64,000 bases of DNA, taken from assembly GCF_020745735.1 (NCBI RefSeq), contig NC_083426.1:12586001-12650000 (forward strand), written 5' to 3'. Shown one piece after another: positions 1 to 35,704 of this stretch. This DNA is from Hemiscyllium ocellatum (Eukaryota). Position numbers and translations under genes: made by a program. The notes beneath the pieces were generated by a model. That model searched no databases and had not been told where the DNA came from. It saw nothing but the letters and a program-made list of their open reading frames with translations. Position 1 is the first letter of the stretch. Every line of letters begins with the position of its first letter.

Positions 1-217
1 AACACAGCCAGATCAGCCAGGACCTTCTCAATGGCAGAGCAGGCTTCAAGGGCTGAAGGTCCCACTTCTGCATTATCGTTTCAGATTATACTTCCTAACA
101 TATACGTCACAGATATAGTGCAGTTTGTACAGAGATATAACGTATTAAGTGATATTTATTTGTATTAAGAACTTATTTTTTCTTCCAATTCCTGAAAAGT
201 TGAACATTTCTCCCCAG

Positions 218-538
218 CTTCATCAAATTTGTGGACAAACGAAAAAGTAACTGGAACTGTGGGAAGATCGATCACAATAAATTGTAGATATGACACATGG
301 TTCAAGTCCAACATGAAATACTGGTGTCTTGGTCGGTCTGCCCGTTGCTCATATTTGGTGAGAACAACTGATCCAGGTGGACAGCAAGGAAGAATGTCAA
401 TCAAAGATTACACAGCACAAGGAGTATTTGTTGTGACCATGGAGGATCTTCGCATCAAAGATGCAGGATGGTACAGCTGTGGTATTGATAGACAAGTTAT
501 TGATGAATTACGTGCTGTGAAGGTTGAAGTATCTGATG
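218..538 (+). CDS. Gene A exon: V-set Ig domain 1, CD300/pIgR type (phase 1-1)
   Basis: Acceptor ttctccccAG (216-217) and donor GTacat (539-540). Translation (A)SSNLWTNEKVTGTVGRSITINCRY...KYWCLGRSARC...DAGWYSCGID...VSD has the B/F-strand Cys plus the extra KYWC...C pair typical of CD300/pIgR V domains. Confidence 0.9.
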
Positions 539-849
539 GTACATTTCTCATTGATTTCTGTTAGTAATCTCTAATGAAATGTCTGATCAATGTTTTGTCT
601 GGGAGAAACCATGAACACTCCAATATCTCAAGGTGCCCCAGAAATGCTGATACTTGCTGGGGGGAACATAGGAACAGGAGGAGGCCATTCATCCTATTGA
701 TCCTGCCCCACACTTTGCTGCGATCATGGCTGATCGAACACTTCAATACCATTAATTTTTCCTCCCATTAATCATTAAAAATGTATCACCTTCTACTTTA
801 AATGTACAACTTAAAATCTGGTGAACCTATGATACACTCCATCTCTGGC

Positions 850-1560
850 AGTATTATCTTTTCTGAGATCAGGTGATCAAAACTGCAAACAATACTTCAG
901 GTGTGGTCTAACCAAGATCCTACACAACATCTGAAGCAAGAATTCTCAAATCCTCTTGTATTAAATGTTAATATTCCATTAGCCTTCCAAATAACTTGCT
1001 GCACCTGCAAGTTAGCCGTCAGTATCAGATAGACAAGGGCATCCAAGTGACTTTGCAAATCTGTACTTTCCAACATCTCACCATTTGAAAACTACACTGC
1101 ACATCAGCTCTTCCTACCAAAGTGGATAACCTCACATTTCTCCACATCATAGACCATTGACCAAAATCCTGCTCAATCATTAAGCATATCCAAATCCTCC
1201 TGAAGAAGTTTTGCATCTTCCTAACAACACATAATCCTTCTTTGCTTGTATCATCTGCAAAGTTGGGAATATTACATTTTGTTCCACATCCAAATCATTG
1301 ATATACATTGAGAAAAGCTGATCCTTGTGGAATCCCATTAGTCACAGCCTGCCAATGTGAGAAAGCTCAATTTATTCCTACTCTCTATTTTCTATCTGTT
1401 CACCAATCATCAATCCATGTCAGTACATTATGTCCTATACCTTGTGCTTCAACTTTGCAAACAAATCTCCTCTCCGGTTCATCTGAAAGGCCTTCTCAAA
1501 TTTCAAATGCTCTCTATCCATTAACTTAGCTTCATCAGTTTTGTTAGTAACCTTCTCAAA
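850..1560 (-). mobile_element. Decayed CR1-type LINE fragment (copy at ~43590-44300)
   Basis: RT-region remnants on the minus strand. Confidence 0.55.
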
Positions 1561-1984
1561 AAGTTCCAACAGTTCGTAAAACATAATTTTCCATTCACCA
1601 ATACACACTGACTACACAGCATTAATTCATTTTTATCCAAGTGTCCATTTATTATTATCTTTTTTGATACAGTCTAGCATTTTCCTCACAACTGATGGAT
1701 CAGTAAATCCTATTTTTCTCCTTTCTCCAATACATCATCTATCTCTATGAACACATTATTGACACTTTGGAATGCAGACTATCAGTTCTTGGGGATTTTC
1801 CAACTTTCATTAATTTCTCCAGTATATCCTTCTTACCAATACTAATGTCCTTCACCCCATCATTCTCACTTGTCAGTTGGATTTGTAAATCAACTGGATT
1901 TTTTGTATTTTCCTAACCAAAACTGTCACAAATTACTCATTTATCTGCTCTGCCATTTCTCCATTTGGTCTGTTAAATTAATAG

Positions 1985-2318
1985 AATAGAGTCGAATCCC
2001 TTCAGTGTGAAAACAGGCCCTTTGGCCCAACAGGTCTGCATTGACCATGTGAAGAGTAACCCACCCAGACCCATTCCCCTGTGGCTATTACTTGATTAAT
2101 ACCCCTAACCTACATGTCCCTGAACACTATGGGCAATTTAGCATGGCCAATTCATCTAAACTGCACATCTTAGATTTGTGTGAGAAACCAGAGCACCCAG
2201 AGAAAATACACACAGACACAAGGAGACTGTGTAAACTCCACCCAGACGGTTGCCCAAGTCTGGGATCGAACCCAGGTCCCTGTGAGGCAGCAGTACTAAC
2301 TATTGTGCCAACATGTCA
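1985..2318 (-). mobile_element. HE1-type tRNA-derived SINE (copy at ~44729-45062)
   Basis: Reverse complement shows A/B-box head (gttagtactgctgcctcac...gggttcgatccc), conserved body and CR1-like tail. Confidence 0.75.
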
Positions 2319-2949
2319 CCCATTCTCCTAACTCTCCTAACTCTGCTTTTAATGGACTCTTTGCTAAAAGTTGTTTTTCACAGCTGCAGAAGCTTTCAAC
2401 TTTATGTCTTCTTTGTTCGATTGCATTTGTATTCTCTTTTTTCCTTTGCAGTTTCAAGGTCCTCCTTGCTTAAAAAAACTTCCAATCCTCTGATTTCTGA
2501 TGGTTTTGGCCACCTTTTAGGCCTATTGTTTTAATCTTTTAAATCCTTGACTTTCTTTTATCTGTCACGGTTGATTTATCTTTCTTGAGTGGAATATTTT
2601 GTTGCTGTATGCCATGAAATAAGTCTTTAAAGACTCTCCATTGACTATCTTCTGTCCTGCCTTTTAATGTGCTTCTGTAATCCAGCGCAGAGTCGAGAGT
2701 GTGGTGCTGGAAAAGCACAGCCGGTCAGGCAGCATCCGAGGGGCAGAAGAATCAACATTTCAGCAATAAGCCCTGCATCAGGAATAATGCCCGAAACATC
2801 ACTTCTCCTGCTCATTGGATGCTGCCTGTGTTTTTCCAGCACCACACTCTTCCACTCTGATCTCCAACATCAGCATGTCCTCACTTTCTTCCAATCCAGC
2901 TCAGCCAATTTGTGCCTCTCTCTTTCTTAATTTTCCTAATTTTAAGAAC

Positions 2950-3900
2950 AACAGCATAAGAACAAAGTGCAGAAAGCGGCCGTTTGGCCCTTCGAGCCTA
3001 CTCCGCCCCTCAATAAGATAATGCCTAGTCTTTTTGTGGACTCAGCTCCACTTACCCACATTTTCACCATATCCCTTAATTCCTTTATGTTTCAAAAAGT
3101 ATCTACCTTAGCTATAAAAGGAATTACTGACGTAGCGTCAACTACTTCCCTGGGCAAGAAATTCCATAGACTAACAACCCTCTGGCTTCATGTAATAATC
3201 TATTTTTCCTACCAAATTGTATGACTTCACATTGGCTAACAGTGTATTCCATCAGCCAGATTTTTGCCCACTGATTCAATGTATCAAGTTTCTCTGCAAA
3301 GTTTCACAGTCCTCTGAACACGTTGCTCTGCCACTCATCTTCGTATCACTGGCAAATTTTGACACTGTGCATGTGGTCCCCAACTCCTCATCATCTACAT
3401 AAATTGGAAATAATTGTGGTCCTTGAGGCACACCACTAGTCACTGGTTGCCAGCCAGCATAGCACTCATTATCCCCACTCTTTGCTTCCTGTCAGTCAAC
3501 CAATCCTTGATACAAACTAATACTCTACCCCGAACACCAGGCATCCTTATCTTATTCAGCAGCCTCATGTGCAGCACTTTGTCAATGGCCTTTTAGAAAT
3601 CTAGGTACACCACATTCACTGGGTCCCCATTGTCTACCTTGATTGAAATGTCTTCACAGAATTCCAAAAGATTTGTGAAGCACAACCTGACCTTCATGAA
3701 CCCATGGGACAATTTATTTTGAGATGCCTTGCTATTCCTTCCTTGATAATAGACTCAAGCATCTTCCCCATTACATGGGCTAAGCACGCTGGTCTATAAT
3801 TCCCCACCCTCTGTCTACTTCCCTCGTTGAACAATACCGTGATGCAGAGAACCTTTGTCCCATCATGTCCGTGCTGGTCAACAAGCATCTATCTAACGTG
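2950..3900. mobile_element. Decayed CR1-type LINE fragments (copy at ~45690-46640)
   Basis: CR1 3' tail aacagcataagaac..; minus-strand GNYRP..L..VMGKMLESIIK motif. Confidence 0.6.
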
Positions 3901-4164
3901 ATCCCATGTTCCAGTACTTTGCCTATAGCCTTGTATGGTCTGGCACTTCAAGTGATCACTTAAATATATTCTCAAGTGTTCTGGAGGATCAATTACAGTC
4001 TGTTAATCTTTCAATTAATGCAATATTAAGTTGTTAATGGCATGGCTCTGTGGAGATTACAACATGAAAATACTTGGATGAAAAGATAGAAATATTGAAA
4101 TTTACAGAGTTATTTGATTTTTGGATCCTCAGTGAGTATCTGATCATTTGTTTCTTTCCCACAG

Positions 4165-4485
4165 AACCTGTGTCTGTCCCTGTAATTCGATTTTTAACAC
4201 CAAATATCTGGTGTTTTGAGAACCTAGTTTCTGTTTCCTGTGAGTCTGTCCAGGGATCCTTTCCCATTCGGTACACATGGTACGAAAGGACCCGATCTGT
4301 AGGTTCAACGATTTCTGAGAACAATATACTGGATCTACATTGTCAATTATTCAAACAACAATATAATCAATATTACTGCATAGCCTCAAACACTCAGGGA
4401 GAACAATACAGTGAAACGGTGAAAGTGACAATTGTCCACAGATCAGAGAGGAACTGCAGTTTTGTGGCACAGATTGGGAACCGAG
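4165..4485 (+). CDS. Gene A exon: C2-type Ig domain 2 (phase 1-1)
   Basis: Acceptor tttctttcccacAG and donor GTaaat. Translation (E)PVSVPVIRF...WCFE..VSCESVQGSFPIRYTWY...LDLHCQ...YYCIASN...RNCSFVAQIGNR; the CES.QGS.PI.Y.W motif is FcR/FCRL-like C2. Confidence 0.88.
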
Positions 4486-4984
4486 GTAAATAATACTTTC
4501 TGTTCAAGAAGTGCAGTTTGTTTGTTTTTATTTCATCTGTGCACTAATAGAATATAATGTATTCTCTATTTTGTGGTTACCTTTCTCCCAGACTAAATGT
4601 GTTTATATTGGAAGAGGAGTCAATTTAACTGGGCTTTCTTGAGTTAACACTGAGTGAGTTTGTTCTTCACTAAACAAATAAAATATTAATAATATAACAC
4701 ACATATACAGACATTGAGAGTATGAAGTGAGTCTAAAGAAAATAATAACAGTTAATTAAAGAGGCTGAGACTCTGAGTTGTTCATAAAGAGTGGATAGTA
4801 AAACATTACAGCCATGACAGTGGGTGTTAGTTGGAGCGCTGTGCAGTTGATTGAGATTCTTGGTGTTGAGCAGATTAATTGAAATTCATTTGTCAGGTTT
4901 GTTTTGACAAATGCTGGCTGGCAGCACTCGGAATAAGAAAGAGTTTAGGGTGAAGATTTGCTCACTGAGCTGTAGGCTTGATAT

Positions 4985-5022
4985 CCAGACGTTTCATTAC
5001 CTGGTGGTAACATCATCAGTGG
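4985..5022 (-). ncRNA. Minimal hammerhead ribozyme motif in the inverted arm
   Basis: Minus strand cca-CTGATGA-t-GTTAC(caccag)GTAAT-GAAA-C-GTC-tgg. Confidence 0.6.
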
Positions 5023-5508
5023 CGATCTCCAAGTGACACGAAGCTGTTGTCTCCTGCTTTCTATTTATATGTTTGTGGTTCCTGAGGTTTGTGGTGATGT
5101 CATTTCCTGTTCATTTTCTGAGGGGTTGATAGATGGTATCTAGATCTATGTGTTTGTTTATGGCGTTGTGGCTGGAGTGCCAGGCCTCTAGGAATTGTCT
5201 GGTATGTCTTTACTTAGCCTGTCCCAGGATAGATGTGTTGTCCCAGTCGAAATGGTGGGTTTTTTTGCCTCTGAGTGTACGGCTACAAGGGAGAGAGGGT
5301 CGTGTCTTTTTGTGGCTAGTTGGTGTTTGTGTATCCTGGTGGCTAACTTTCTTCCTGCTTGTCCTACGTAGTGTTTGTGGCAGTGCTTGCATGGAATTTT
5401 GTAGAAAACGAACAGGAAATGGCATCACCACAAACCCCAGGAACCCCATCCAGGAGAAAGATATAAATAGAAAGCAGGGGAAAACAGCTTCGCTTCTCTT
5501 GGAGGTCG

Positions 5509-5548
5509 CCACTGATGATGTTACTTAGCCAGGTAATGAAACGTCTGG
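5509..5548 (+). ncRNA. Minimal hammerhead ribozyme motif, second Penelope family (copy at 48249-48288)
   Basis: cca-CTGATGA-t-GTTAC(ttagccag)GTAAT-GAAA-C-GTC-tgg; core intact with entirely different stems. Confidence 0.65.
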
Positions 5549-6364
5549 ATATCAAACCTACAGCTCAGCGAGCAAACCAACACCCTAAACCTCAATCTGA
5601 GCTACAAACCTTCACAAACCTTACACAAAATAAGAAAGAGTGTAACCTCATTCTTTTCCCACAATGCAGGGATATTTAATGGCTGTTCACCAAACTGTGA
5701 CCTTCACATCACACTATCCACAGATCAGGAGATCTGACCACTGACACAGACAGAGAGCAGGATTGAATTTCACTTTTAACTCCTGCCTATGTGTATAACT
5801 GAAAGGGGAAAACCAAGAAAATGATCACTCAGCCAGATTGCTGACACTTCTCCCACCATGATCATAGCCTGAGATAATTCTAAGGAATGAATGAATGAAT
5901 GAGTGAGTGGATTAGCTTATGGAATGAATTAGCTTTATATTTACATACACACAATGAGTGCAGCGAAAAGGTTATATGTCACCACTTACAGTGACATCTT
6001 CGGTACAAAGGTATCTAGGTACAGCTGCTTTAGTTACAAACTCTCAGAAAATGGAAAATTAAAATGTTCAACATTGCTGAAATAAAAGACCAGAACAACG
6101 GTCTTCCAACCCATACCACGCCAACTGAACACATTTGCCTTGTTGTGTGTTTCTTCCTTTATGTCAATCCTTTTGAAGTTTATGTGACACACTGTTTTGC
6201 ACAAATTTTTAGCATCTCTCTCCACATATCCTCTGAATTCACATATGCAGTAATTTTGGCTTGATCAGTTGTCTTTAGAAATAAATATTGAAAGTAAAGT
6301 TCAATTTATAAGTGATTAAATGAAGTACAGCTGCACTTGTTGAAAATACTTTAAAAATAGAAAG

Positions 6365-6720
6365 TGGGAGTCATGGTGGTTCAGTGGTTAGATCTGCTGC
6401 CTCACAGAACCAGAGACCCAGGTGTGATTCCAGATTCAGGGAACTGACTGTGTTGGAGTTTGTACATTCTCCCTGTGTCTGCATGGGTTTCATCAGGGTG
6501 TCCGGGTTTCTTCCCACAATCCAAAGATGTGCGGGTTAGGTGAACTATCATGTTAAACAGCCCAAAGTGTTCAAGGATGTGTATGTTGAGTGGATTAGTT
6601 AGGGCGAATGTAGAGTCATAGGGGTAGGGGAATGGTTCTAGGTGGGTTGCACTTTGGATGGTCAGTATGGACGTTTTGGGCCAAATGGCCTGTTTCTACA
6701 CTGTAGGGATTTTATGATTC
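6365..6720 (+). mobile_element. HE1-type tRNA-derived SINE (copy at ~49105-49460)
   Basis: tggttcagtggttag (A box), ggtgtgattcc (B box-like), body ttctccctgtgtctgcatgggtttc, tail gggccaaatggcctgtttctacactgtagggatt. Confidence 0.8.
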
Positions 6721-7688
6721 ATTCCATGATCATGACACCCTGCCACCCTCGTTTACCGTCTCCCCACAAAAGTAGCAAATGCCCCTTGGAGAGTATTGGT
6801 CCTGATTCTTCTAGTTCATGACCTGTCCACCTTGTACAGATTCCATCTTCACCAGAATTGGACCAAGGCGTCAAGAGTCTAAATCCCTCTCTCCCCACAA
6901 TCAGGCAGCTGAGCCACTCCTGGTGCCATGGATGTGGCTTTCGCTGCATTCACCTGAGAACACATCTCCCCCAGCTGCATGGAAAAGGGAAAATCTATGA
7001 GAAAGGGAGACAGCCTCAGTGTGTTCCTGCACTCCCTGCCCAGTGTTTTCACTCTGTCTGAGTGATCTCCATTCCCTTTCTGTCAGTGCCCCCTCCACCG
7101 ACAGTGTAGTGACACCATTGCATGTGTTATCCATGAAGGTCTCAGCCTACTGGGTCCATCACAGTGACTCCAGATCACTGATGGCCATATCCAACACAGC
7201 CTAGCCATACACAACTGCCCTTGAACTTCCCTCATAGTCCCCTCTGCGGAACCCAAGCAATTCTGTTGCATTGTCTGCAAGACTACGTTACTAATAACAG
7301 TGCTTTGTAGAAGGAGTCTACTCTCTGTCTCTTTCAAAATTTAGTCCCTATCTGTAATTTTTTGAACTCCTCTTCAGTGACCCTCAAACTCTGCTGAGTG
7401 ATCAACTGAAATACTACAAAACACCCCATCTTGAGGCTATTTGATACAAACCCTGTTGCTGGGCAGAATTGAATGATGCGGTGGAAAAGCTTTGCAAATG
7501 AGTGCACATTGGATGTTACATTTCTCAGGCAATGCTGGTCTCCCTAACACAATTAGATGGATTTCACCACAAACTGCCTGAGTAGATGCGGTGGAAGGAT
7601 TCCTCTGTACTCAGTGGTAACTCATATTAAAAGTATCTGAATGTGTTGAGAAGCTATTTTCTGTTTGATGAATTCATTGTCTTTTCAG

Positions 7689-7997
7689 GTTCAGGTGTAG
7701 TGCCGGTGAAAAGTAAAGTAACAGGAGTTTTGGGAAGAGCGATCACAATAGACTGTCACTATGACCAATGGTCACAATGGTCTGTGAAAGTTTGGATGCG
7801 CCAGTGCTCTGTTTTAGTAAAATCAAGTGAACATCATGGACAACGAGGAAGGATGTCGATCACAGATAACACGACACAAAATAAATTTTCTGTTACGATG
7901 GAGGATCTTCGCTCAGAAGATGCAGGATGGTACAGCTGTGGTATTGATCAATCCGGCCTCATTTCAGTGTCTGCTATAGAGCTGCATATATCTGACG
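7689..7997 (+). CDS. Gene A exon: V-set Ig domain 3 with a 4-residue deletion in the C strand (phase 1-1)
   Basis: Acceptor cttttcAG and donor GTacat. Translation (G)SGVVPVKSKVTGVLGRAITIDCHY...VKVWMRQC...DAGWYSCGID...ISD; open frame, paralogous to domain 1. Confidence 0.85.
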
Positions 7998-9394
7998 GTA
8001 CATTTCTCAGTGATATCATTGATTATTCCCCATTGAGATGTAAGATTGATGTTTTATCTGTGAGAGAACATGACAGTTCCAGTACCCTGATGCCCCGTGA
8101 CAGTGAAAGGGTTTTGCATTTGTGGGGCGGGTAACTCAATGCTTTGCAAAAAGAATTGGAACCTTGTGGCCAAGATGACTGATCTAAAAACATCAAATTT
8201 GATGAAATGGAGTGCTGTCGTTCTTATCCTCCTTGTCCCTCCCACCAGCTAAAACATTGTGAGAGTTTACACCTCCATTCCCAATGGCTGCCTGCAGTCA
8301 TTTAACACTGAGTACAGAGGGAAGTGAATGGGGATGTGACTTTTGGTCCCTCAGCAGCAGTGGGCACCACTTGGACCTGAGCAAGTTCCCTGAAGGGGAA
8401 GAACCAGGTTCCAGTCTGGGACATGCTGTCAGTGCAGAGAGAGAGGGATGGGGCTCTGGGATGTGCTGTAATAGGTCATTCAGAGACATTTGAAGGAGAT
8501 TTTCCGCCACCAACCTTTTTGCTGATATTATTCAAGCCCATTGATATCACTCGGGAAGAATAGCCTCATACTGTCTTCAGTAGAATATCAGATTGATTTG
8601 ATCAAACAGCAGATTGGATTATTACACATCAAGGAATAGCTCATTGCATTACATCTAAGATACACAACTGCCTCTTGTGAGTCAATCAGGATCAACTTAG
8701 ATTAAGTATGCATTACTGCTTCAGCTAACATGAAGACAATCACTGAAACACTACTCGCTCTCTGGTGAACATATGCAGAACTTGTAGCCCACAAAGAGAC
8801 TCTAGTTAGCTTCTCCCAGGAACTGTGCTAAGGATGCGTCTGGTCACCAATATGTTTCGAGTATTCACTTGACGCAGAGATAAAGGAGAAATGTAACTCC
8901 ACACCCATTCACTCCGACAGAACAGGCTGACGAATGTTGAATGGGATTTTAGTCAGTAGAAACAGGAGACCCAACTGACTTATAGCTTAAAGTCATTGGC
9001 TCTGGGGACATTGAAGTAGACAGTAAATCTGACACAACATCCATTTACCCAGCATTTCTAGATTTCAGAATCCTAGAAACACAAACTGCCACCTCCTTAT
9101 GAATTTTTTAGTTAAAATATCCTTTTCAGTCACAGTGAAGCCAGACAAAGCAAATTTAAACTCTATGTTTAAGGCCAGAAAGCTTGTAACAAATATCTGC
9201 CAATTTATTGCCTTATTTTATTTCATTTTTTGTAAGTTTCTGTCCGACAGCTTTCCATTTGTAAATCAGACACTGAACCAGTTACAGTCTTTGATCTGCT
9301 CCTGAGAGAAAATATTGGCTCTGATTTCCATGTTGACACATGACCATCATCATTGCATTTGTCCTGATTTAGAGTTCTCCTAAGTTCTGATATA

Positions 9395-9885
9395 CAGTTA
9401 GTTCTGGGATAACGTACTCTTCGGCTGTGCGATTTGACGAGAACGTTGTTGAAGAATTAGGGAATGGTATTTTCAAGAACGTTTACCTCCTTTGTTACTC
9501 GCACATTTCCAGCAGGGATGGGTTTGCATGCTTCGTTCTGCACATACAGCGATGTCCGCACCAAAGTCTCCGCACTGTCCTGCACATGTGCTGATATCAG
9601 CTGCTGACAGAGCAGCTTTCCGTGAGAGGGACTGCACAGAGAGCAGCCTTCAGACATTTTTAAATGTACTGTGTTAAATTTACTTTTGTCTCATTGATAA
9701 ATATGATTTCCACCTTCATTCAGGCTGTGCTATACTTTGCGTTAGACTTTTGGGTGATATTTGAGCACTCTTGAGTGATATTTTTTGCCTGTCTGCCCTA
9801 ACCCCACTTTTCCCGTAGGCCCCATTATTTATATTCAGCGAGGTTTCACTGGAACACAACTATAGCATTATAGGGGAACCACCTG
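9395..9885. mobile_element. Tc1/mariner (Tigger/pogo-like) MITE (copy at 52135-52625)
   Basis: TA|CAGTTAGTTCTGGGATAACG ... CATTATAGGGGAACCACCTG|TA: imperfect terminal inverted repeats with TA duplication, no ORF. Confidence 0.65.
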
Positions 9886-10065
9886 TAATAGTAGACATGG
9901 GAAATCACTTTACCTGGAGTCCGGAGAGGTGTGGCGAGGGAGATATGTTGAGGATATTCCAACATACAAGCCCTGGATTAGATATAGAAGTTTAGAAATG
10001 TTAGAAAGAAGAAAGTACTTGAATGCTGTTCATGTGGTATCTGAATATCTACTTCTTTTCCCCAG

Positions 10066-10392
10066 ACCCTGTGTCTCTTCCTGAACTTAGATTTTTATCA
10101 TCTCCACCAAATGCGTCATGTTTTGGGAGCTCGGTGTCAATCTCCTGTGAATCTGTCCAGGGATCCCTCCCCATTCACTACACATGGTATGAAAGGACCC
10201 CATCTGAAGCTTCAAAGATCTCTAACACCAGTAAACTGGATCTACATTGTCAATCCTTCACACATCAACATCATCAATATTACTGCACAGCCTCAAATAC
10301 TCAAGGAGAAAAATCCAGTGAAATTGTTAATGTGTCAGTCACACACAGACCAGGGGAGAACTGCAGTTATGTGGCACAAATCAGCAACAGTG
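10066..10392 (+). CDS. Gene A exon: C2-type Ig domain 4 (phase 1-1)
   Basis: Acceptor cttcttttccccAG and donor GTaagt. Translation (D)PVSLPELRF...SCFG..ISCESVQGSLPIHYTWY...LDLHCQ...YYCTASN...ENCSYVAQISNS. Confidence 0.88.
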
Positions 10393-13150
10393 GTAAGTTA
10401 CACTGTAAACAAACAATATAATTGTCAAAATATAAATTTCTCACGAATTAGTTGCTGATTATATTCATGCAGTCAGTCTAAAAAATTGGAACTGGCCAAA
10501 TTTACTCCATCTGGTTTTCAATAGATCGGAACAAGACAATTTAGTTGAATAAGGATAAGATTATACAATGTCCCAAAAACATGGATAAACTTTGCAGAAA
10601 TTCCACTAATCCCAGAAAAATAAAATATCATCAAATTGATGAGTCTTCAACAGCTGAAATAGCTATTGTGACTTCCAGCTCCTGCATTCTCATTTAGGAT
10701 GGATGTCAGGAGAGAGTGTTAAAGAGTTTATCTAAAATGGAAGTGACTGAGCACAATCTCTGGACATCTAAAGCATTTACAGCCATTGCTTGTTGAAGTC
10801 TCCTCACTCCTGCAATACAGGAAGTGCAGCAATCAATCTGTCCAGAGACAACTCCCACAAACAGTAATGTGAAAATCACGAGATGACATCTTTAATTGGG
10901 GGATAAATATTATCCAGATACTGGAGTAACTGCACTATTCTTCTTCAAGATAGTGCCCTGGATCATTGACATTGATCAGAGTTGGCAGATGGAGTTTCAG
11001 TTTAACATCTTACCAAAAAGGTAGCACTGCCAGCCCTGCAGCACTCTTTCACCAACACACTGGAGTGAGAGCATTCAATTTTATGCTCAAACCCTGGCCC
11101 AGATATAAATATTCTTTGCAACATGGATTGCCGGCTGGAATATGTGTTAGAAACCGAGTTAATAATAATGTTTAAAAGGGAAGTGAAAGGATATTAATAA
11201 AATCAAAGAACTGTAGTTACTGAAAATCTGAAACTGACGAGAAACTGACTGTAGCAGAATCAAAATGGGTAAAGACTTGGTTCTGAGTTAAGGATGCCTT
11301 TACCATCATTGAATGTAACAGTTTAAACAGCAGGAACTGTTTCATCACTGTTGCTTTCAGTGAGGAACATTAGAATAATCAGACTAAAAGAGAAGTGCAT
11401 TTTTCCTGAGCAGCCGTATATATCTCCTTACTTACTCCAGTTATTGACAATGGACACATGCTTTAGCTTCAGAGAAGATCAGTGTCAGCAGCAAGTAAAC
11501 AAAAATTTACCCATAACCTACATTTGTACAAACTGATTTCTGATGTTAGTGGGTTGTGAATTCAAATTACCCTTCACAGATTAAATTCCATGTTGTCTGA
11601 CCCTGGAACAGTGCTCTATTGCTGGAGGGACTGTTGGGATGTTATGCTACAGACCATGACATCCTTCAGCTGGTATAATTCAAGGAAGAACAGGAAAATT
11701 CACTCAGTATTTCATCAACTTCACCCCTCAGTTAAGATGATGGAGAGCAGATTATCTGGTGATAACATTTCTGGGAATTTCTCATGTATGCAAATTAGCT
11801 TCTGTTTCCCCACGTCACAACCAGGATTACAATAAAGGGAAGAGCTTTGTGGGTTGTGTAGTATTTAAAGATGTGCTGAGGTTGTGAAAGTTGCAGGATG
11901 AGCACAATTTATTGGGAGATTTTGAATTAAATGAATGATCTGAATCACATCTGAGGCACTTCCCTGCAGGTTCAATGGATGTGGGGGCTTTTGCCTGATA
12001 CATCGAATTTCTTGCTCCTCGGAGGCTGCCTGACCCGTTGTGCTTTTCCAGCACCTCTCCAATCCAGGCTCAATGGATGTGAGGAACCTTGGAGACTTGC
12101 AATACAATCTGAACAGGGGAATATTGAATAAATATTGGTTATTTGTTCACTGACACTGATGGCAGAAATTCCTGGTCTAATATTTCCCTCCAGATACAGT
12201 GTGGAGCTGAACATCCTTTTCTATCATGGCTAGAATCAAAGTTATTAGGTCTCCAGAAATGCATTTTCTGCTGAATGTTTTATTCATTCACTGGATGTAG
12301 GGATCACTGGCTATGCCAACATTTATTTCCCATTCTGAATTGTTCAGAGTCAGCCACATTGCTGTGGGTCTGGAGTCACATGTAGGTCAGAGCAGGTAAA
12401 GATGGCAGTTCCTTTACCTCAAGGCCATCAGAACCAGATGGGTTTTTCCTGACAATCGACAACAGATTTGTGGTCACTATCAGGCTCTTAATTCCAGTTT
12501 CTTTTGTTTGATGAATTCAAATTCCACTATCTGAATGGCAGGGTTTAAAACCAGTTCCCCAGAACATTGCCAGGTCTCTGGATTAATAGTCAAGAGTAGA
12601 GTAGTGTACTGGAAAAGCACAGCAGGTCAGGCAACATCTGAGGAGCAGGAAAATCAACGTTTCAAGCAAAAGCCCACCATCAATGATGCTGCCTAACGTT
12701 CTGTGCTTTTCCAGCACCACTCTAATCCTGACTCTGATCTCCAGCATCTGCACTACTCACTTTCGTCTCTCTGGATTAATAGTCTAGCAATAACACCACT
12801 TGGTCATCATCTCCTCAAGTGATAAGGAGTGCCAGTTCTCTGACTGGAATTATGTGTTTGCAGAGGACACAAAGGGGATGTCGAGATTGGATTCCTTTAA
12901 CAGGCTCAGTAGGTAATGCTGTGCTCCCATCTGTGAGACATGGGAAACAATTAGAAACGATCGTGAAAGATGGGTCACTGACTGGTCACAGTGGGAACAT
13001 CCGGCTGGTGAGGGGGTGGACATTACACTGAGATTATGATTTCCAAATCCATTATATCAGACACGCGTTTCTTCCAATCTGACAATGTTGCTCTTTTGGT
13101 TAACTTTAGTAAAAAAAGGTTAATCTGAATGTTATTCTTTGTTTCAATAG

Positions 13151-13229
13151 GAGCTGATGACTGTTATAAAATTTCAACAGTATCATCGACAACTACAAAT
13201 TCAAACATCACGTCTCAACTTAATATAAG
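13151..13229 (+). CDS. Gene A exon: Ser/Thr-rich stalk (phase 1-2)
   Basis: Acceptor ttctttgtttcaatAG and donor GTacga. The 79 nt read (G)ADDCYKISTVSSTTTNSNITSQLNI(S); phases fit the flanking C2 and TM exons, and the exon is conserved in the duplicate. Confidence 0.75.
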
Positions 13230-13724
13230 GTACGACTATCTCAACGTTAGTGTTTGATGACTTCCATGTGATAGATTAAATCCTCTTGAAAACTGTTTTG
13301 TTATTCGGGATGGAAATCATTTACTATTTCACGACATAACTCTCAGAATGGAAATGGGGCTGGATTGACATCAGGCTGTGGCATTAGCTTCTCAACAAAT
13401 TGTGATTTTTGTGTTGGAAACAAGAACAAGAGGCAAACAGCTGCAGGTTGCTGGCCCTCAGATCCATTATTCATCACAATTACTTCACTACTACCTTGAT
13501 TGGATTTCATGAAGACTGTGAATGTCACATTGACCTTGCCCTTTTCCACCCCGGTGTGGTACTGAGGGAAATGTTGTTTCTCTGTGTGTTAATAAATCTG
13601 CTCAACCTTGGTGTCACTTGGGAGGAACACCTGGTCAACTTTGGTCAAATTTGCAGTGAGGAGACCTTCTTCTTGATGGTATTCTCAATGTGGTGTAGGA
13701 GATACCGGGTACCTTACAGTGCAG

Positions 13725-15780
13725 AGTCATAGATAGAGTCATAGACTCATACAGCTCAGAGACAGATCCTTTAGTCCAACTCGTCTGTGCTGACCAGACA
13801 TCCCAATCTGACCTAGTCCTATTGACCAACATTGGGCCCATATCCCTCTAAACCCTTCCTATTCATATACTCATCAGATGCCTTTTAAATGTTGCAATTG
13901 TACACACTTCCATCAAAGAAGCAAAAATATATAATCAAGGCAGAATGGAATATTGTTTTGAGGAGGTTTGTTCACATGATGGTATTTGATGTATCCTTTT
14001 GGCTGGTACAAGACATTAGGTGATTGTGAGTAATGGTGACAAGATATTTGAAATAGATCCTCCAGATGTTGACATTGCCATCGTATGTCTACAGGAAGGA
14101 TTTGTTAAACATGAGAGGATGCAGAAAAGATTCACAAGGATGTTGCTGATGTTGGAGGGTTTGAGTTAGAAGGGGAGTTGAATAGGCTGGGGCTTTCTTC
14201 CTTGAAGCTTTGAAGGCTGAGGGATGATATTACAGAGGATTATAAAGTCATGAGGGGCATGAATACATGAATAGCCACAGACTATTTCCGAGGGTGGGCG
14301 AGTCCAAAACTGGAGGACGTAGGTTTATGGTGACAGAGGAAAGATTTAACAAGGATCTAAGGGGCAACATTTTCATGCAGAGGGCACTGGCAGAGAAAGT
14401 AGTGGAGGTGAGTACAATGATCACTTTAAAAGACATCTGGGTGGATATATGAATAGGAAGGGTTTAGAGCGATATGGGCCAAATGCTGGCAAATGTAACT
14501 CGGGATGTCTGGTCAGTGTGCATGAGTTGGACTGAAGGTCTGTTTCCATGCTGTATGATTCTATGGCTCTATCTATGACTCTGTCAAAGATGAACAAAGA
14601 ACAAAGAAAATTACAGTATAAGAACAGGCCCTTCGGCCCTACAAGCCTGTGTTGATCCAGCTCCTTTATCTAAACCTGCCACCTATTTTCTAAGGTTCTG
14701 TCTCCCTCTGCTCCCTGCCCATTCATGTATCTGTCTAGGTACATCTTAAATGACACTGACATGCCCACCTCAACCACCTCTGCTGGCAATGCTTTCCAGC
14801 ACGCACCACCCTCTGCGTGAAGGACTTTCCATGCATATCTCCCTTAAACTTTTCCCCTCTCACCTTGAACTCATGTCCCCCTCGTAACTGAGTCCCCCAC
14901 GCTGGGAAAAACCTTCTTGCTATCCACCCAGTCGAGACCTCTCATGATTTTATAGACCTCAATCAGGTCCCCCAGCAACCTCCATCTTTCTAATGAAAAT
15001 AATCTTCATATACTCAACTTCCCTTCATAGCTAGCACCCTTCATTCCAGGTAAAATCCTGGTAAATCTCCTCTGCACCCTCTCCAAAGCATTCAAATCCT
15101 TTTGGGAATGTGTCAACCACAACCAAATGCAGTATTCCAAATGTGGTTGAACCAAAGTCTTATACAACTATAACATGACCTGCCAACTCTTGTACTCAAC
15201 ACCCCGTCCAATGAAGGAAAGCATGCTGTATGCCTTCTTGGCCACTCTATTGACCTGCGTTGTCATCTTCAGAGTACAATGGACTTGAGCATCCAGATCT
15301 CTCTGTACATCAATTTTGCCCAGGACTTTTCCATTTATCGTATTGTTCGCTCTTGAATTTGATCTTCAAAAACGCATCACCTCATATTTGCCCAGATTGA
15401 ACTTCATCTGGCATTTCCCTGCCCAACTTTCCAATCTATCTATATTCTGCTGTATTCACTGGCAGTCCCCTTCACTATCTGCTACTCCATCAATCTTAGT
15501 GTCATCTGCAAGCTTGCTAATCAGACCACTAATACCTTCCTCCAGATCATTTGTGTATATCACAAACAACAGTGGTCCCAGCACGGATCCCTGTGGAACA
15601 CCACTGGTCACAGGTCTCCACTTTGAGAAATTCCCTCCCACTACTACTCTCAGTCACCTGTTGACCAACCAGTTTTTTTATCCATGTAGCTAGTATTCCC
15701 TGGACCCCACGCGACTTCACTTTCTCCAACAGCCTACCATGTGGAACTTTATCAAATGTCTTACTGAAGTCCGTGAAGAT
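13725..15780. mobile_element. Cluster of CR1 LINE 3' fragments in both orientations (copy at ~56365-58790)
   Basis: ORF remnants [47 protein letters not shown]; (ctatga)n tails. Confidence 0.8.
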
Positions 15781-16119
15781 GGTGAGTCCTATTTTCACAG
15801 TCAGCCAATGATGGAAAAACTGGATGTTTATCTGGTGGCAGCTGGACCTTGTGTCATTTTAAGTCAATGCTTGATGGAGATCTTTCCATTTTCATTTGTG
15901 ATTCACCTACTCATTTTGCAGAATTCACTTCTCATTTCCACATTATTTGCCCAAGCTGCTGACAGTAAGTATAGGAAATGTTGTCTGTTATAAACACTGA
16001 GGAATTGAGCATTTGAATTTACGATGGTGGTAACAGAGTAAAAAGAAACAAAATATCAAACGCACTGGAAATGAGAAGTGAAATATCAGACAGAAGAGAC
16101 ATGATTGAATATGCATAAA

Positions 16120-17530
16120 GCCATGTTGACGATCCCTGATCAATCCTTGCCTTTCCAAATACATGTACATTCTGTCCCTCAGGATTCCCTCCAACAACTT
16201 GCCCACTACCAATGTCAGGCTCTCTGGTCTGTAGTTCCCTGGCTTGTCCTTTACCACCTTTCTTAAACAGTGGCACCACATTCGCCAACCTCCAGTCTGC
16301 CAGCACTTCACCTGTGACCGTTGATGATACAAATATCTCAGCAAGTCCACCAGTTTCCTCATTTCCCCTCCCCCCACCTTACCCCAGTTCCAACCCTCCA
16401 GCTCAGCACCATCTGCAATACGTGCCCCACCTGCCAATCTCCCTTACCACCTGTCCGCTCCACCCTCTTCTCTGACCTATCACCTTCATCCCCACCCCCA
16501 TTCACCTATTGTAATATTTGCTACCTTCTCCCCAGCCCAATCCCCCCATTTATTTTTCCACCCCGGAGGATTCCTGCCTCTATTCCTGACGAAGGGCTTT
16601 TGCCCGATGCGTCGACTTTCCTGCTCCTCGGATGCTGCCTGACCAGCTGTGCTTTTCCTGCACTACTCTAACCAAAATTACAGATCTGAGTCTGACATCA
16701 GTGGTGGGTAAGTTGTTGAAGGGGATTTTGAGAGATCCGATTTACAGGCATTTAGAGAGGCAAGAACTGATTCGGGATAGTATGTGGGAAATCGTGCGTT
16801 CTAAACTTGATTGAGGGTTTTGAGAATGCAGCCAAAAATGTTGCGAGAGTAGAGCAGTAGATGTTGTCTATATGGACTTTAGGAACAAGGTTCCACATGG
16901 TAGACTGAGTCATAAAGTTAGATCACATGGGATTCAGGGTGAGCTTGCCAATTGAATCAAAATTAGCTTGATAGCAGGAGAGACAGGGTGGTGGAGGGTC
17001 ATTTGTTTGGACTGGAGGCCTGTGATCAGTGGTGTTCTGCAGGGATCAGTGTAATTTATACAAGTAATTTGAATGAGAAATTAGAAGACATGGTTATTAA
17101 GTTCATGGATGGCACCAAAATTGGGACGTTTTCCCCTGGAGCGGAGGAGGTTGGGAGGTGACTTTATCGGGGTTTATAAAATCATGAGGGATCTAGATAA
17201 GGTGTTTAGCAAAGGTTTTTTGTTATGAGGCTGGGAGAGTTCAAAGTGAGGGGTCATGTTTTCGTGGTGAGAGGAGAAAAATGTGAAATGAACCTGAGGG
17301 GTAACATTCTCACTGAGAGAGTGGCTCATATGTGGAATGATCTGCCAGAGGACATGGGGGATGAAGGGGCAGTTGCAACATTAAAAAGACATTTGGATCA
17401 GTACATAAATAGGAAAGATTTGGAGGGTACGCGCCAAATGCAAACAAGTGGGACTGTTTTTTTGAGAAACTTGTTCATCGCGGATGTATTAAACTGCAGG
17501 GACTATTTCTGTGTCATATGAGTCTATGAC
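16120..17530. mobile_element. Mosaic of CR1 fragments at the duplication breakpoint
   Basis: GNYRPESLTLVVGKLLEGILRDR, GKLLKGILRD and RVAHMWNDLPE motifs. Confidence 0.7.
16335..16670 (+). mobile_element. Penelope-like 3' end fragment
   Basis: C-rich sequence similar to 62300-62617, ending in a decayed CTGACGA...GCCC hammerhead tail. Confidence 0.7.
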
Positions 17531-17620: not shown

Positions 17621-17890
17621 GAAAGTTTCCTGAACTTCAATTTTAATCACAACCAAATGTCTCATGCTCTGGGGGTTTAGTCACAATCTCCTGTGAGTCT
17701 GCCCGAGGATTCCTCCTCATTCACGTCACATGGTCTGAGAAGACCCCAACACAAGATTCAATGATCTCTGACACCAACAAACTGGAGCTACATTGTCAAT
17801 CCTTCACACAACAACATCATCAATATTACTGCATTGTCTCAATTTCTCAGGGAACAAAACCCAGTGAAATGGTTCATGTCTCAGTTCCCA
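17621..17890 (+). pseudogene. Decayed C2 Ig pseudo-exon
   Basis: Reads PELQF*SQPNVSCSGGLVTISCESARG...TWSEKTP..DSMISDTNKLELHCQSFTQQHHQYYC...QGTKPSEMVHVSV. In-frame TAA at 17644-17646; the NCSY end and donor are missing. Closest to the gene B C2 exon. Confidence 0.85.
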
Positions 17891-17974: not shown

Positions 17975-18885
17975 TACAATATACCAATGTCCTGTACAGC
18001 CGCAACATGACATCTCAACTCCTCTACTCAATACTCTGACCAATAAAGGAAAGCATACCAAATGCCTTCTTCACTATCCTATCTAGATGTGACTCCACTT
18101 TCAAGGGGCTTTGAACCTGCACTCCAAGGTGTCTTTGTTCAGCAACATTCCCAAGGACCTTACCATTAAGTGGATAAGTCCTGCTAAGATTTGCTTTCCC
18201 AAAATGCAGCACCTCACATTTATCTGAATTAAACTCCATCTGCCACTTCTCAGCCCATTGGCCCATCTGGTCTAGATTCTGTTGTAATTTCTGGAAGCCT
18301 CTTCACTGTCCTCCACACCTCCAATTCCACTGTCGGAGTATTGCGTGCAATTCTGGTCTCCTTTCTATCGGAAAGATATTGTGAAACTTGAAAGGATTCA
18401 GAAAGGATTTACGAGGATGTTGCCAGGGTTGGAGGATTTGAGTTATAGGGAGAGGTTGAACAAGCTGTGGCTGTACTCCCTGGAGCGTCGGAGGCTGAGT
18501 GGTGACCTTATAGAGGTTTACAAAATTATGAAGGGCATGGATAGGATAAATAGACAAAGTCTTTTCCCGAGGATTGGGGAGTCCAGAACTAGAGGGCATA
18601 GGTTTAGGGTGAGAGGGGAAAGATATAAAAGAGACCTCAGGGGCAATCTTTCCACACAGAGGGTGGTAAGTGTATGGAATGAGCTGCCAGAGGAAGTGGT
18701 GGAGACTGGTACAATTGCAGCATTTAAGAGGGATTTGGATGGGGATAAGAATAGGAAGGGTTTGGAGGGATATGGGCCGGGTGCTGGCAGGTGGGACTAG
18801 ATTGGGTTGGGATATCTGGTTGGCAGGGACAGGTTGGACCAAAGGGTCTGTTTCCATGCTGTACATCTCTATGACTCTATACTGC
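17975..18885 (+). mobile_element. CR1 LINE 3' end with inverted 5' segment
   Basis: Minus strand ~18326 to 17975 reads GQWAEKWQMEFN...AFGMLSFIGQSIE..; plus strand from ~18327 continues EYCVQFWSP...VWNELPEEVV; tail ctctatgactctat. Confidence 0.8.
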
Positions 18886-18968: not shown

Positions 18969-19059
18969 TTACATTGTCTGGGATGTGATACGCTGGGTAC
19001 TCTTCACTCTCCTGGTGATTTCTTCTGTTTCAGTCACAATACTTACACAAAAACATTAG
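18969..19059 (+). CDS. Activating-type transmembrane exon with Asp/Arg and immediate stop (assigned to gene A; phase 2)
   Basis: Acceptor ttcttctgttttacacAG. Translation (S)YIVWDVIRWVLFTLLVISSVSVTILTQKH*, with TAG at 19057-19059 directly followed by donor GTgagc. It is the first phase-2 hydrophobic exon I found after the gene A stalk. Gene A exons plus a 37-nt leader total 1485 nt, in frame. Confidence 0.75.
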
Positions 19060-22000
19060 GTGAGCATCATGGCCTTTACAAGAATGATTTTGAGCACTCT
19101 AAGTTCCCCATCAATGAGGTGGCCCTGGGTGGAGGGGATTTGCAGCAGGAGACGCAGTTTGAGAAGAATGGGTTGACCATTTGGGACTGAGATGAGCGGC
19201 AATTTCTTCACTCAGAGGGTGATGGTTTGTTGGAATTCTCTGCCCCAGAGAGCTCTGGGGGGTCCAGCCTTGAGTGTATTCAAAACAGAGATCGATAATT
19301 TTCTGGTTAATAAAGTTAGGGAGGGACGTGGGGTTAGTGCAAGAAAACATGGTATTCAGGTGGAAGATCTGCTCTGATCCAGGTGAATGCTGACAGAGCC
19401 TAGTGGGGCAGAATGGCCTACTCTGGTCCTGCCTCATCTCTCTCCATGATGACCTCATGCTGTTAAACGCTGTCATTGTACCAGCCTCCACCACTTCCTC
19501 TGGCAGATCATTTCATAAATGCACATCCTCTGCATGAAAACGTTAATCCTCAGGTAATTTTGAAATAATTTCCTTCTCACCTTCAACCTCAGCCCTCTAG
19601 GTCTGGACACTCCCAGAAATGAAAAAGACCTTGGCTCTTCGCCCTGTCCATGCCCTCATTTAAATCTCACTGGATAACATAGTCATGTGTTCTAATCTGG
19701 AACAAAAACAATGTAAATGTTGTTGGGTAGAGAGACAAGAGAGTTAGTGTGTAAATGTTTGATTGGACAAAACCTTGTTACCTGTTAAAATATTAAGATA
19801 CATTTGTTGCTGTTCGAATGAATTGATCTGCTCAGCATTTATTGGTATGTACAGCTCCCAGGCAGACATTAATAAACATTTAAACGCAGAAACCTGAGTC
19901 TTGTCTGGTCTAAAAGGAAACACAGCATTGAAACCCCCTTTCTGGGGCTCTCATAGAACATAGAAGGCGTCAGAGAACAACAGGAGGTGGGGTTATCCCA
20001 AGTCACTGTCACTTTGTCATTCACATGCAGAGGGTTAGGGCTAATAAGGTCTTTGTAATTCTCAACGACATGATCTCTGATGGGAAATTAAGGACACAAT
20101 GGCAATAGAGAGAGAATTAACAGAAATGGTGAGATGACAAAAGATCATTGGATCCACAGGGACGGCAACAATAAAGAGAGGAAGAAGGATCATTCTACAC
20201 CACAGGTAGAGTCTGCTGTTAATTCACAGAAACAGCCCACTGCCTGTGTCTGCAGGATATGGAGCACCTTATTGAAACTACTAATTGTTCTGAAGAATAA
20301 TCAATGGACCCAAAACAGTAATTCTGCTTTCTCTCCACAGAAACAGTCAGACCAGCTGTGTTTCTCCAGCAATTTCAGTTTTTGTCACAAAGACACTCAG
20401 TTGACATTTCACCAATCCTGACCCAGTCGCTGCACAATAACTGTGTAAAATGACAGACACCCAATTACAGTGTCGGGGTGGAGACAGTAATTCATATTTT
20501 GGGAGGGGGAGAAGAGCTGCATTAAAAGTCTATGAATTTGAAACCTAGTCATGGCAATTGCATCCAGCGTGCATCCACTGATTCAGTCCTACCACTGGCA
20601 TCAACTTACACTTCAACAACAGGTCACTCATTGTCCAGAAATAAACATTACAGGTGATGGCCTCAAGCAATTATTGCCAACAACGTTGTTCACCCTCGGT
20701 GTCTCATTAACGACGTGAATGTAACCAGACAAGTACATTTTAAAGGGCCACTTGGGTTTGGTATTTCTGTAATGCACTGCATGGCAAACAGTGGAAGGCA
20801 GCAATCCTCAGTTACAATGGCCATACACTGAATTGTCAGTCTGTGAGGAGATAGTCTGTAATGTGTAAGGCTCCTTGGTTGTGCCAATGACATTTGAATG
20901 AAGATGCACACTTTGGACATCCCAATGGGGTTATGGCATGGACAACATTTCCCCTAAATTTTCACACACTCTCTCTCTCTCCCTCACACACAGACACAAA
21001 CATTTTCTCTGTCCCTCTCTCCCCCAATCTCCCTTGCTGCACACAAACACACCCACACAGAAGTCTATGGGGTGAACTCCATTTGCAAATTAGTATGTGC
21101 AGATACTTTCTATTTTGTTCAAAAAACACACAATCTATATGTAGCCAGTCAATGTGACATTTCCTAAATTCCTACCCGCACAATAAAACCAGTCTGACTC
21201 CATGTTGGTACACACTCTAACCTCATCCCTATAATACATTGTCTGAGCTGAGATATCATTTCTTTATTTACTGATAAGTCCTTAAGATATATCGGGGCGG
21301 TGACGAGAGAAATTCTGGGATTTACATATTAATCAATTGAAATCTGCATCCCATTCTACATGACCACAGACTTCACAGCAATCTCGGTTTCTCTAATACG
21401 TTGCATCCATTGTGTGACACTTTCATCTTTTCCTTATAGATGCTGTGCCCTATGTATCCTGCCCCACTGGCTACCTGACAAAAGAGTAGTGCTCTGAAAG
21501 CTTGTACTTTCAAATAAATCTATTGGACTATAACCTGGTGTTGTGTGATTTTCAGCTCTGTCCATCCCAGTCCAACAGCAGCCCCTCCACATCCTGAATC
21601 TTCTTGCCAGTGGCTCATATCCAGCAGACAGTGAGTGCTGAGCCTGAGTCTGAATGACAGTTGTTCACCTCTCCAAGGAGACAGCTAGACGTACGGCTCG
21701 GGATTGATAGTGATGGTTGATGCCTCCATCCCCATTGATCCAGTTTAAGGACTGTCTCTGACATACCGACCTGCTGTGATTGTGCTTGTCTCTGCATTTT
21801 CACAACTTCAATAAAATTACACCTGACAACTCTGAAGATTGAAGCCATTATCTTTATCCCACTACAATCACCTTTCCTTAGCCACTGACTCCACCCATCT
21901 CCCTGTCCAACAGAGCTCTATCCACGATATTGTTAGCTCCATTCTGAACTATTCCAACATCATTCCAGCTGGCCTTGAATCTTCCACCATACATCAACTT

Positions 22001-24909: not shown

Positions 24910-24949
24910 ATGATGTGGACTTTGATTCTCCTCATCTGTTCCATTCCCG
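24910..24949 (+). CDS. Gene B exon 1: signal peptide
   Basis: ATG ATG TGG ACT TTG ATT CTC CTC ATC TGT TCC ATT CCC G|GTgaat = MMWTLILLICSIP; joins to (V)SGA at 27727. Paralog of 34626-34662. Confidence 0.85.
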
Positions 24950-26170: not shown

Positions 26171-26789
26171 TGAAACGTTCCTGCAAGATGTTTTTTGCTT
26201 TCGCTATGGAAAATAAAGAGCATAAAGGCATGTGAAGGGTTAAACATGAGGACTGGTGGAATGTTACAAGGATCTGTGGAATACTCCATCAGTCGGGTAT
26301 GGAACAATGGCAGTATCATTATGTTAGTTGGGCAGTATAATTAGGTTAGGTACCAACGGCAGCATAATCAGGTTAATCAAAGCACATGACATACAAGTGT
26401 TCGCATGATGTAATAGGGTCAACCTGGGGCTGAAGACCATTGTCACAGATGTAATAGTAAATATCTAATCACTATATAGTAAAGTAAGAATAAGTTTGAA
26501 GTATAAAAAAACCATAGCGGCAGAAGTAGAGACATAACATGAACGAACATCATTGGTTTGTTGCATAACTGCAGAAAGATAACCCTGACTAACACAATTG
26601 GACATGCTGATAAACCTGAAGAAAGCATGATAACTAAGAGATATTAAAAATAACAGACCCCGAGGTGCAGGGGCAATCATGAATTCGCTTTCTGATTGTT
26701 CAGGCTTTTGTTTGCAAATAAAAGATCATCTGCTTGAAGAACTCACCACGTCTCCTGGTAATTCTCCACGGTATCACCCACCAACTTCA
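26171..26789 (+). mobile_element. Possible solo LTR
   Basis: TGAA...TTCA termini, tataaaa and AATAAA near the 3' end; no target duplication found. Confidence 0.25.
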
Positions 26790-29530: not shown

Positions 29531-29540
29531 AGATCAAAGT

Positions 29541-35700: not shown

Positions 35701-35704
35701 GTGC

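Follow-up and report, generated by a model that had tools for sequence, protein, structure and literature searches.

Pairs of activating and inhibitory receptors that are kept matched by gene conversion are well studied in mammals (Siglec, CD300, KIR and CEACAM), and they are usually explained by an arms race in which pathogens take advantage of the inhibitory partner. In SIGLEC11/SIGLEC16 the converted region includes the ligand-binding exon together with upstream DNA and is fragmented; the paralogues cluster per species in that region, and the 3' region keeps the paralogous topology (PMC5701461). The same pattern is seen in SIGLEC5/SIGLEC14 (PMC4042635), and in primate CD300A/CD300C lineage-specific shared motifs have been traced to gene conversion, by which the ligand-binding domain is preserved (PMC12447643). 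[quoted passage not shown] Here we analyzed a window of 64,000 nucleotides (nt) from the epaulette shark Hemiscyllium ocellatum (NC_083426.1, positions 12,586,001-12,650,000, forward strand, without N and without soft-masking), to which all positions below refer. It contains two plus-strand genes, gene A (about -8 kb to 19.06 kb, copy 1) and gene C (34.6 kb to past 64 kb, copy 2). We consider it likely that the two form, in tandem, an activating/inhibitory pair of MDIR/CD300/pIgR-like receptors whose 5' parts have repeatedly been overwritten by one another.

As with SIGLEC11/16 and SIGLEC5/14, the shark genes would be an inhibitory and an activating gene in linkage, homogenised repeatedly over their ectodomain-coding 5' parts together with the introns and the DNA upstream (PMC5701461, PMC4042635). 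Again as in those pairs, the ectodomains cluster within species, and a patchy island of low divergence parallels the fragmented conversion. However, there are several differences. The shark tract spans at least 14.8 kb and four immunoglobulin (Ig) exons as opposed to the ~2 kb reported for SIGLEC11/16 (PMC5701461), and the shark copies lie 42.7 kb apart in direct orientation as opposed to ~9 kb. The shark pair also belongs to another Ig family and comes from a shark and not a primate. The resemblance to CD300A/C lies in the CD300-type V-set domain and in the combination of an inhibitory partner carrying immunoreceptor tyrosine-based inhibitory motifs (ITIMs) with an activating partner that has a charged anchor (PMC12447643). 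In contrast to the V-C2-V-C2 arrangement of the shark, the mammalian proteins have one V domain, and the mammalian evidence consists of protein motifs over ~112 amino acids (aa) rather than a genomic tract with dated strata. The clearnose skate MDIRs are of the same protein family (~50% identity to MDIR3) and likewise include activating and inhibitory members, but that work described cDNAs without locus-level concerted evolution, as far as the searched literature shows. No report of ectodomain homogenisation in cartilaginous fish or in MDIRs was found in the literature searched.

The mechanism is a known one, in a new lineage and a new family. The presence of the same signature in a shark, apparently in at least two hemiscylliid genera, suggests that the strategy is either as old as the jawed vertebrates or arises easily. 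The locus is also a natural record, as its dated strata and transposon-marked boundary bear on the length and the stopping points of non-allelic exchanges.

Stepped divergence between the two copies

The copies were compared by self-BLAST of the window and by a global MAFFT alignment of 1-16400 with 42745-59600, from which the counterpart of 1-16095 in gene C is 42745-59254 on the same strand. Positions 1-11986 align to 42745-54726 with 99.38% identity, differing by 54 substitutions and three small indels (1, 11 and 8 nt at 2472, 2624 and 2825). Identity then falls to 90.75% for 12065-15332 against 54707-57969, 88.6% for 15302-15801 against 58312-58806 and 90.6% for 15788-16095 against 58947-59254, which amounts to ~91% overall from the end of the 99.4% block to 16095/59254. 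Past this point neither self-BLAST nor MAFFT detected homology between the copies. Copy-specific insertions comprise 98 nt at 11985 in copy A, and 370 nt at 57963 and 154 nt at 58793 in copy C, and the repeat depth table shows that a high-copy interspersed repeat fills much of 11.85-12.8 kb and 13.6-15.9 kb.

The near-identical core of copy A, 1-10925, matches 42745-53665 at 0.07-0.8% divergence (29 substitutions), contains four Ig exons with their introns and extends upstream of the window. The exons follow the order V-C2-V-C2, each is in phase 1-1, and splice sites are intact throughout in both copies. Exons V1 (V-set, 218-538; twin 42962-43282), C2a (4165-4485; twin 46905-47225) and V2 (V-set, 7689-7997; twin 50429-50737) show no differences between genes A and C, and the last Ig exon, C2b (10066-10392; twin 52806-53132), has one synonymous difference at 10089 that is the sole Ig-exon difference. 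The ectodomain proteins are accordingly identical at 426 of 426 aa.

We next modelled the divergence profile as a Poisson process with change points, scored by the Bayesian information criterion (BIC), and assessed heterogeneity within the core by permutation. The BIC dropped from 3697 for one segment to 2977 for four to five segments, and at least three to five segments are strongly preferred over uniform divergence. Specifically, divergence between copies A and C is 0.12% over 1-2600, 0.79% over a 2.8 kb sub-block at 2601-5375 and 0.07% over 5376-10925. An intermediate zone at 10926-11986, which forms the tail of the tract, has 1.9% divergence to 11851 and 5.2% over its final 135 nt (11852-11986). 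Beyond it an older stratum at 12065-13325 has 5-7.6% divergence and contains the stalk exon (13151-13229, 79 nt, phase 1 in and phase 2 out; twin 55794-55872), which differs between the copies at 4 nt and 3 aa. This stratum is followed by a low-divergence island of ~0.55 kb at 13326-13875 (1.1-1.8%) and then by the oldest stratum at 13876-16095, where divergence reaches 10.7-14.7% with many indels and mostly interspersed repeats. The contrast between the sub-block at 0.8% and the 0.1% on either side is significant by permutation (p≤0.001). CpG hypermutability was ruled out as its cause, as only 5 of 22 changes are in a CpG context. The island probably reflects a separate or patchy conversion. 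Constraint was ruled out as an explanation for it by contigs from two related species, here called relatives B and C, whose pieces spanning the island lie 5.3-6.1% away from copy A.

The sharp step in this profile coincides with a 78-nt fragment of a high-copy repeat (repeat depth about 1e4) that is present at 11987-12064 in copy A only and is flanked by 20-nt direct repeats at 11967-11986 and 12065-12084. Of these target duplications the left one equals copy C exactly and the right one has mismatches at 2 of its 20 nt, a pattern indicating that the latest exchanges ran to the heterology and stopped there. In relative B, one contig starts in unique sequence at 11623 and reaches 12011, inside this copy-A-only insertion, which indicates that the lineage bearing the insertion predates the species split.

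On the 5' side the copies already align at window position 1, which places the start of the tract off the window. Some of the upstream extent is nevertheless available from the automatic NCBI model of gene A, XP_060700982.1 (P0002 in our homologue set). With a gene span of 22,011 nt the model has its first exon at -2820, exactly 39924 minus 42,744, and all 22 residues of this exon are identical in copy C. The exact 42,744-nt offset and the identical residues indicate near-identity without a net indel to at least 2.8 kb upstream of the window, and hence a tract of at least 14.8 kb. Divergence of this leader-like first exon between the copies was considered and ruled out, as the apparent 88% identity is an artefact of aligning across a splice site. 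The exon itself (MLCFSQ..., about -2820) is not a signal peptide.

Most of what the initial annotation had seen by eye held up. Near-identity from 1 to ~11.0 kb over all four Ig exons and their introns is borne out by the 29 substitutions in 10.9 kb, and its small indel cluster at ~2.4-3.0 kb corresponds to the indels at 2472, 2624 and 2825. The scattered differences it placed at 11.0-11.85 kb, giving way to dense differences and copy-specific insertions up to 16.1 kb, are the 1.9% zone and the 5-15% strata with insertions of 98, 370 and 154 nt. Its observation that homology stops before the transmembrane exons agrees with the end of alignment at 16095/59254 and with the unrelated anchor exons beyond (18969-19058 and 59572-59660). 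Uniform divergence, which it had named as the outcome that would speak against it in a sliding comparison of the copies, is rejected by the BIC values. Three points needed amendment. The step in identity after the last Ig exon does exist, sharply, at 11986, but it is part of a staircase with an island at 13326-13875 and is not a single step. The sharing of four Ig exons stood, and to these is added a fifth shared exon, the stalk, in the diverged part. Finally, a homogenised tract inside an older duplication is upheld only on the 3' side, where older homology continues to 16095, the 5' boundary being off the window.

Relatives, paralogues and competing explanations

Relatives B and C (~17% shared 31-mers) were compared as low-coverage contigs from public runs (Logan) at 85% likeness. 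Their distance from copy A, taken in the intron that follows exon 4 and over the island, is 3.4-6.1%, where copies A and C differ by 0.2-2%; between species these introns thus diverge at a normal rate. Between copies A and C, introns match no less closely than exons, and identity drops abruptly on the 3' side. The close match of the introns indicates that the similarity is at the DNA level and does not come from protein constraint, and as introns are ~5% diverged between species against 0.2-2% between paralogues, constraint is excluded as the cause. In the 3' part this relation is inverted, with the 11-15% divergence between copies A and C exceeding the interspecies value of ~5%. For example, a relative C contig at 14128-14333 is 2.9% from copy A, where copies A and C are 11.7% apart.

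A similar picture is obtained from proteins of the genus Chiloscyllium. C. punctatum has two 4-Ig copies (within P0152 and P0151) that are 96.9% identical to each other, 93.4-93.9% identical to the inhibitory orthologue of C. plagiosum (P0248) and 90-92% identical to the H. ocellatum pair. The ectodomain protein tree is ((HocA,HocC),(Cpl,(Cpu,Cpu))), with support of 100/98 for the C. punctatum pair, and a single clade of inhibitory genes is rejected on these data by the approximately unbiased (AU) test (p=0.006). Clustering of the Ig-exon paralogues within species, which the initial annotation had predicted, is thus seen with proteins in both H. ocellatum and C. punctatum.

A three-sequence mosaic test of A, C and a third H. 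ocellatum paralogue, P0249 (XP_060700980.1), gave a further line of evidence. In the V2 and C2b exons there are 14 sites where A equals C against P0249 and none where A equals P0249 against C; over the stalk exon together with its read-through these counts are 0 and 4, respectively (Fisher p=3.3e-4). There is a mosaic breakpoint between 10392 and 13151 in gene A. P0249 itself differs from gene A by ~220 nt over the V2-to-stalk span, and its C2b exon is 87% identical. As a separate observation, the C2b motifs IFCE and PSQDSK are common to the C. punctatum inhibitory copy and to H. ocellatum P0164 and P0250 but absent from the nearest relatives of these; this sharing suggests a patchwork of exchange among more than two family members.

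Our favored explanation, which we hold to be probable, is recurrent gene conversion of the ectodomain part between two older paralogues with differing signalling ends. The gene-conversion reading of the initial annotation therefore gains support from the stepped divergence, the within-species clustering, the mosaic breakpoint and the excess of intron divergence between species. According to this explanation the 5' parts of genes A and C would derive from an old duplication, the oldest surviving stratum of which (11-15%) would be older than the ~5% split from Chiloscyllium-like relatives. Non-allelic homologous recombination between direct repeats 42.7 kb apart would then have repeatedly overwritten one copy with the other. 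Every exchange would span the Ig exons, and 3' ends that vary within the intron after exon 4 would generate a staircase of ages. The latest large events would have halted at the copy-A-only repeat insertion, a heterology that would block extension of the heteroduplex. As an outcome both receptors would present the same four-domain ligand-binding face with opposite signalling. Both the recombination mechanism and the recurrence of the exchanges are likely features of this scheme, and selection for matched ligand specificity presumably keeps the converted versions. There is a weak hint that transfer went from the inhibitory to the activating gene, as the 3' part of gene A groups with other activating paralogues.

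Several points weigh against recurrent conversion. The 5' boundary lies outside the window, and a tract of at least 14.8 kb is much above the typical length of interlocus conversion tracts. Classical tracts of this type are usually under 1-2 kb, so that several events, or a founding unequal crossover with later conversions, are needed. Contig records contain a third H. ocellatum sequence that is ~3% from the 3' region of copy A, which points to a third locus close to the 3' half of gene A. As this value is near the 1.9% of the tract tail, gene A could have arisen as a hybrid in one unequal crossover, with only its core homogenised later. Orthology of the 3' introns rests on a few short Logan contigs of the relatives. 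The anchor exon of gene A is a predicted splice for which the RefSeq model takes another acceptor. Finally, the C. punctatum proteins are fused automatic models, and the presumed activating status of the second 4-Ig copy rests on these. Gene A may have been founded by unequal crossover as a hybrid, its 5' part of inhibitory type and its 3' part of activating type, but even then the younger strata need later conversions.

The rival that fares best dispenses with recurrent conversion altogether. It holds that gene A is a young hybrid, made by one recent unequal crossover or segmental duplication, of the 5' part of gene C with the 3' part of an activating paralogue, with 11,986 as the junction of a tandem duplication of ~42.7 kb. 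The length of the tract and its off-window 5' end fit such an event, as do the grouping of the gene A stalk region with P0249 and the H. ocellatum contigs at ~3%. However, one event should leave one divergence, whereas we observe 0.07%, 0.8%, 1.9%, 5-7.6%, an island at 1.1-1.8% and 11-15%. The C. punctatum pair clusters apart from its C. plagiosum orthologue, which indicates that homogenisation recurs in other lineages, and P0249, with its ~220 differences, is no near-identical twin. We regard this account as unlikely.

Much less probable still is an assembly artefact, in which the 12 kb represent one locus or two haplotypes placed twice, or were homogenised by polishing. The core divergence of ~0.1% is at the level of allelic heterozygosity, and the public runs provide only low-coverage contigs that give no measure of copy number. 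On the other hand, the copies differ in a structured pattern at 54 sites and three indels, and each continues directly into a diverged 3' part of its own. An independent H. ocellatum sample yielded contigs of both H1-type and H2-type, including both 3' types and the copy-A-type tail, and at the diagnostic site 11057 both letters occur in sample S1 (among the best 40 of 648 variant rows, by support). An independent assembly from another species also has a similar near-identical 4-Ig pair. The last rival, a single duplication in which unequal mutation or purifying selection kept 1-11 kb alike, can claim possible constraint on the Ig exons as coding sequence, but has next to no probability given that introns make up >85% of the tract and match as closely as the exons do, that the same intron DNA diverged by ~5% between species, and that the ectodomain protein evolves quickly (8-10% diverged between genera).

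Recurrent conversion at this locus might belong to something wider, although we consider this a rather doubtful extension: ectodomain-targeted homogenisation of receptor pairs could be ancient and recurrent in the cartilaginous-fish MDIR/CD300-like family, in unusually long exchanges (at least 15 kb) that begin 5' to the Ig exons and have 3' ends set by transposon insertions as heterology barriers. If true, the dated staircase could serve to estimate how often conversion occurs and how long its tracts are in a genome that evolves slowly.

Family membership and signalling ends

Homologues were collected by a HMMER scan with the V2 exon, which found P0002, and then through the relatives of P0002, giving 116 homologues at E≤1e-30. 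The NCBI name of P0002 is 'Fc receptor-like protein 5 [Hemiscyllium ocellatum]', and its relatives from many sharks and rays are labelled pIgR-like or Fc receptor-like (FcRL 5). Clearnose-skate MDIR3, MDIR5 and MDIR2 are among the matches (so named in UniRef for P0182, P0197 and P0239), MDIR3 at E 4.5e-146 with ~50% identity over 81% coverage. Both V exons score 46 bits with the Pfam V-set model (cut-off 26). Judged by names, none of the 116 homologues is a Siglec. The likeness to Siglec-5/14 is one of evolutionary mechanism only; the genes are MDIR/CD300/pIgR-like and not Siglecs.

Within the ectodomain (218-10392) the V1 and V2 proteins are 51% identical, C2a and C2b are 61% identical, and flanking intron DNA can be aligned at 70-77%. 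The V-C2-V-C2 arrangement is the product of internal duplication of one V-C2 unit. Intron 2 of both copies also carries an inverted repeat of ~180 nt with 85% identity between its arms (4943-5119/5403-5590 and 47683-47859/48143-48330). The stretch between the arms (5098-5400) is 74-75% like 29724-30021, which lies downstream of the C2 exon of an intervening gene B, and each of the two has a hydrophobic open reading frame (ORF). This likeness is possibly a relic anchor exon of the duplicated V-C2 unit, or else a repeat element.

The two genes differ at their signalling ends, where the anchor exons 18969-19058 (gene A) and 59572-59660 (gene C) are unrelated to each other. The stalk exon of gene A joins its anchor exon in phase, and the resulting helix contains Asp and Arg and is followed by a tail of 4 aa, with the stop codon TAG immediately 5' of a GTGAGC donor. 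This exon shares 80-88% identity with the anchor exon of P0224, P0032, P0185 and P0164, which are family members from H. ocellatum and Chiloscyllium. As predicted from sequence, the gene A anchor is of a charged, activating type found family-wide, and gene A would signal through an adaptor. The RefSeq model XP_060700982.1 instead uses an inner acceptor at 19033/19034, which is out of frame through the donor and gives a 53-aa tail without a membrane anchor (18969-19190), whereas the in-phase acceptor at 18968 yields the conserved activating anchor of the family. A search of RNA runs with the gene A anchor exon gave matches only in runs guessed as RNA, at 0.19-0.26 of words.

Gene C has a probable leader exon at 34626-34662 (MWTLVLLICSIP, phase 1 donor). 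A second leader-like ORF with a downstream GTGAGT donor (MWILILFTIHCP..., 36612-36670) lies 2 kb past it and may be a decayed or alternative leader exon. The uncharged anchor exon of gene C has a basic stop-transfer sequence and agrees at 29 of 29 residues with the anchor of C. plagiosum P0248. Its first cytoplasmic exon (63299-63345) is identical at 16 of 16 residues to the tail start of C. punctatum P0151. It matches Chiloscyllium tails with three ITIM-like motifs (IVYSSI, VIYADL and AIYANV); the remaining tail of gene C, with its ITIM exons, lies past the window. Gene C is predicted to be the inhibitory partner, given its uncharged anchor and the orthology of its tail to Chiloscyllium ITIM tails. 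Overall, anchor and tail exons are orthologous across species, as seen for the anchor and first tail exon of gene C and for the gene A anchor, which matches the activating exon of the family.

The four-Ig, stalk, uncharged-anchor and ITIM-tail structure of gene C corresponds to no H. ocellatum protein model among the P0002 homologues, and its exons look intact, so gene C may be unannotated or mis-modelled. The locus thereby flags annotation faults, with a gene A model that lacks its anchor and a gene C without a matching protein model in the searched collection. Many automatic models in this cluster also fuse adjacent receptor genes, running from an anchor exon through read-through into the next leader and the next ectodomain. 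These include C. punctatum P0151/P0152, C. plagiosum P0248 and H. ocellatum P0032/P0175/P0185. Because neighbouring models are fused, family counts and architectures in shark annotations are unreliable.

Sequence between and around the genes

The last intron of gene A holds a relic C2 pseudo-exon with an in-frame stop (17626-17886), a remnant of a V-C2-TM activating gene. Between the two copies lies gene B (24913-31488), with a leader at 24913-24948 and a V exon at 27737-28033 that is broken by an internal deletion and two stops. An intact C2 exon follows at 28172-28500, only ~140 nt downstream of the V exon, and an ORF at 31180-31488 has three ITIM-like motifs (LVYANI, ITYAVL and VTYSEL). Gene B is probably a pseudogene; the NCBI annotation calls no gene there.

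Two minisatellites are grouped as lying between gene B and the gene C leader, one at 32557-33919 with ~38 copies of a G-rich 35-nt unit (GC 57%, GC skew +0.61) and one at 35701-36327 with ~18.6 copies of a 34-nt unit. The intron of gene C between the anchor and the first tail exon contains a 501-aa ORF of retrotransposon-like appearance (60885-62387). Smaller reverse-transcriptase-like fragments are present at 15547-16437 (minus strand), 16848-17123, 18345-18800 and 28809-29361.

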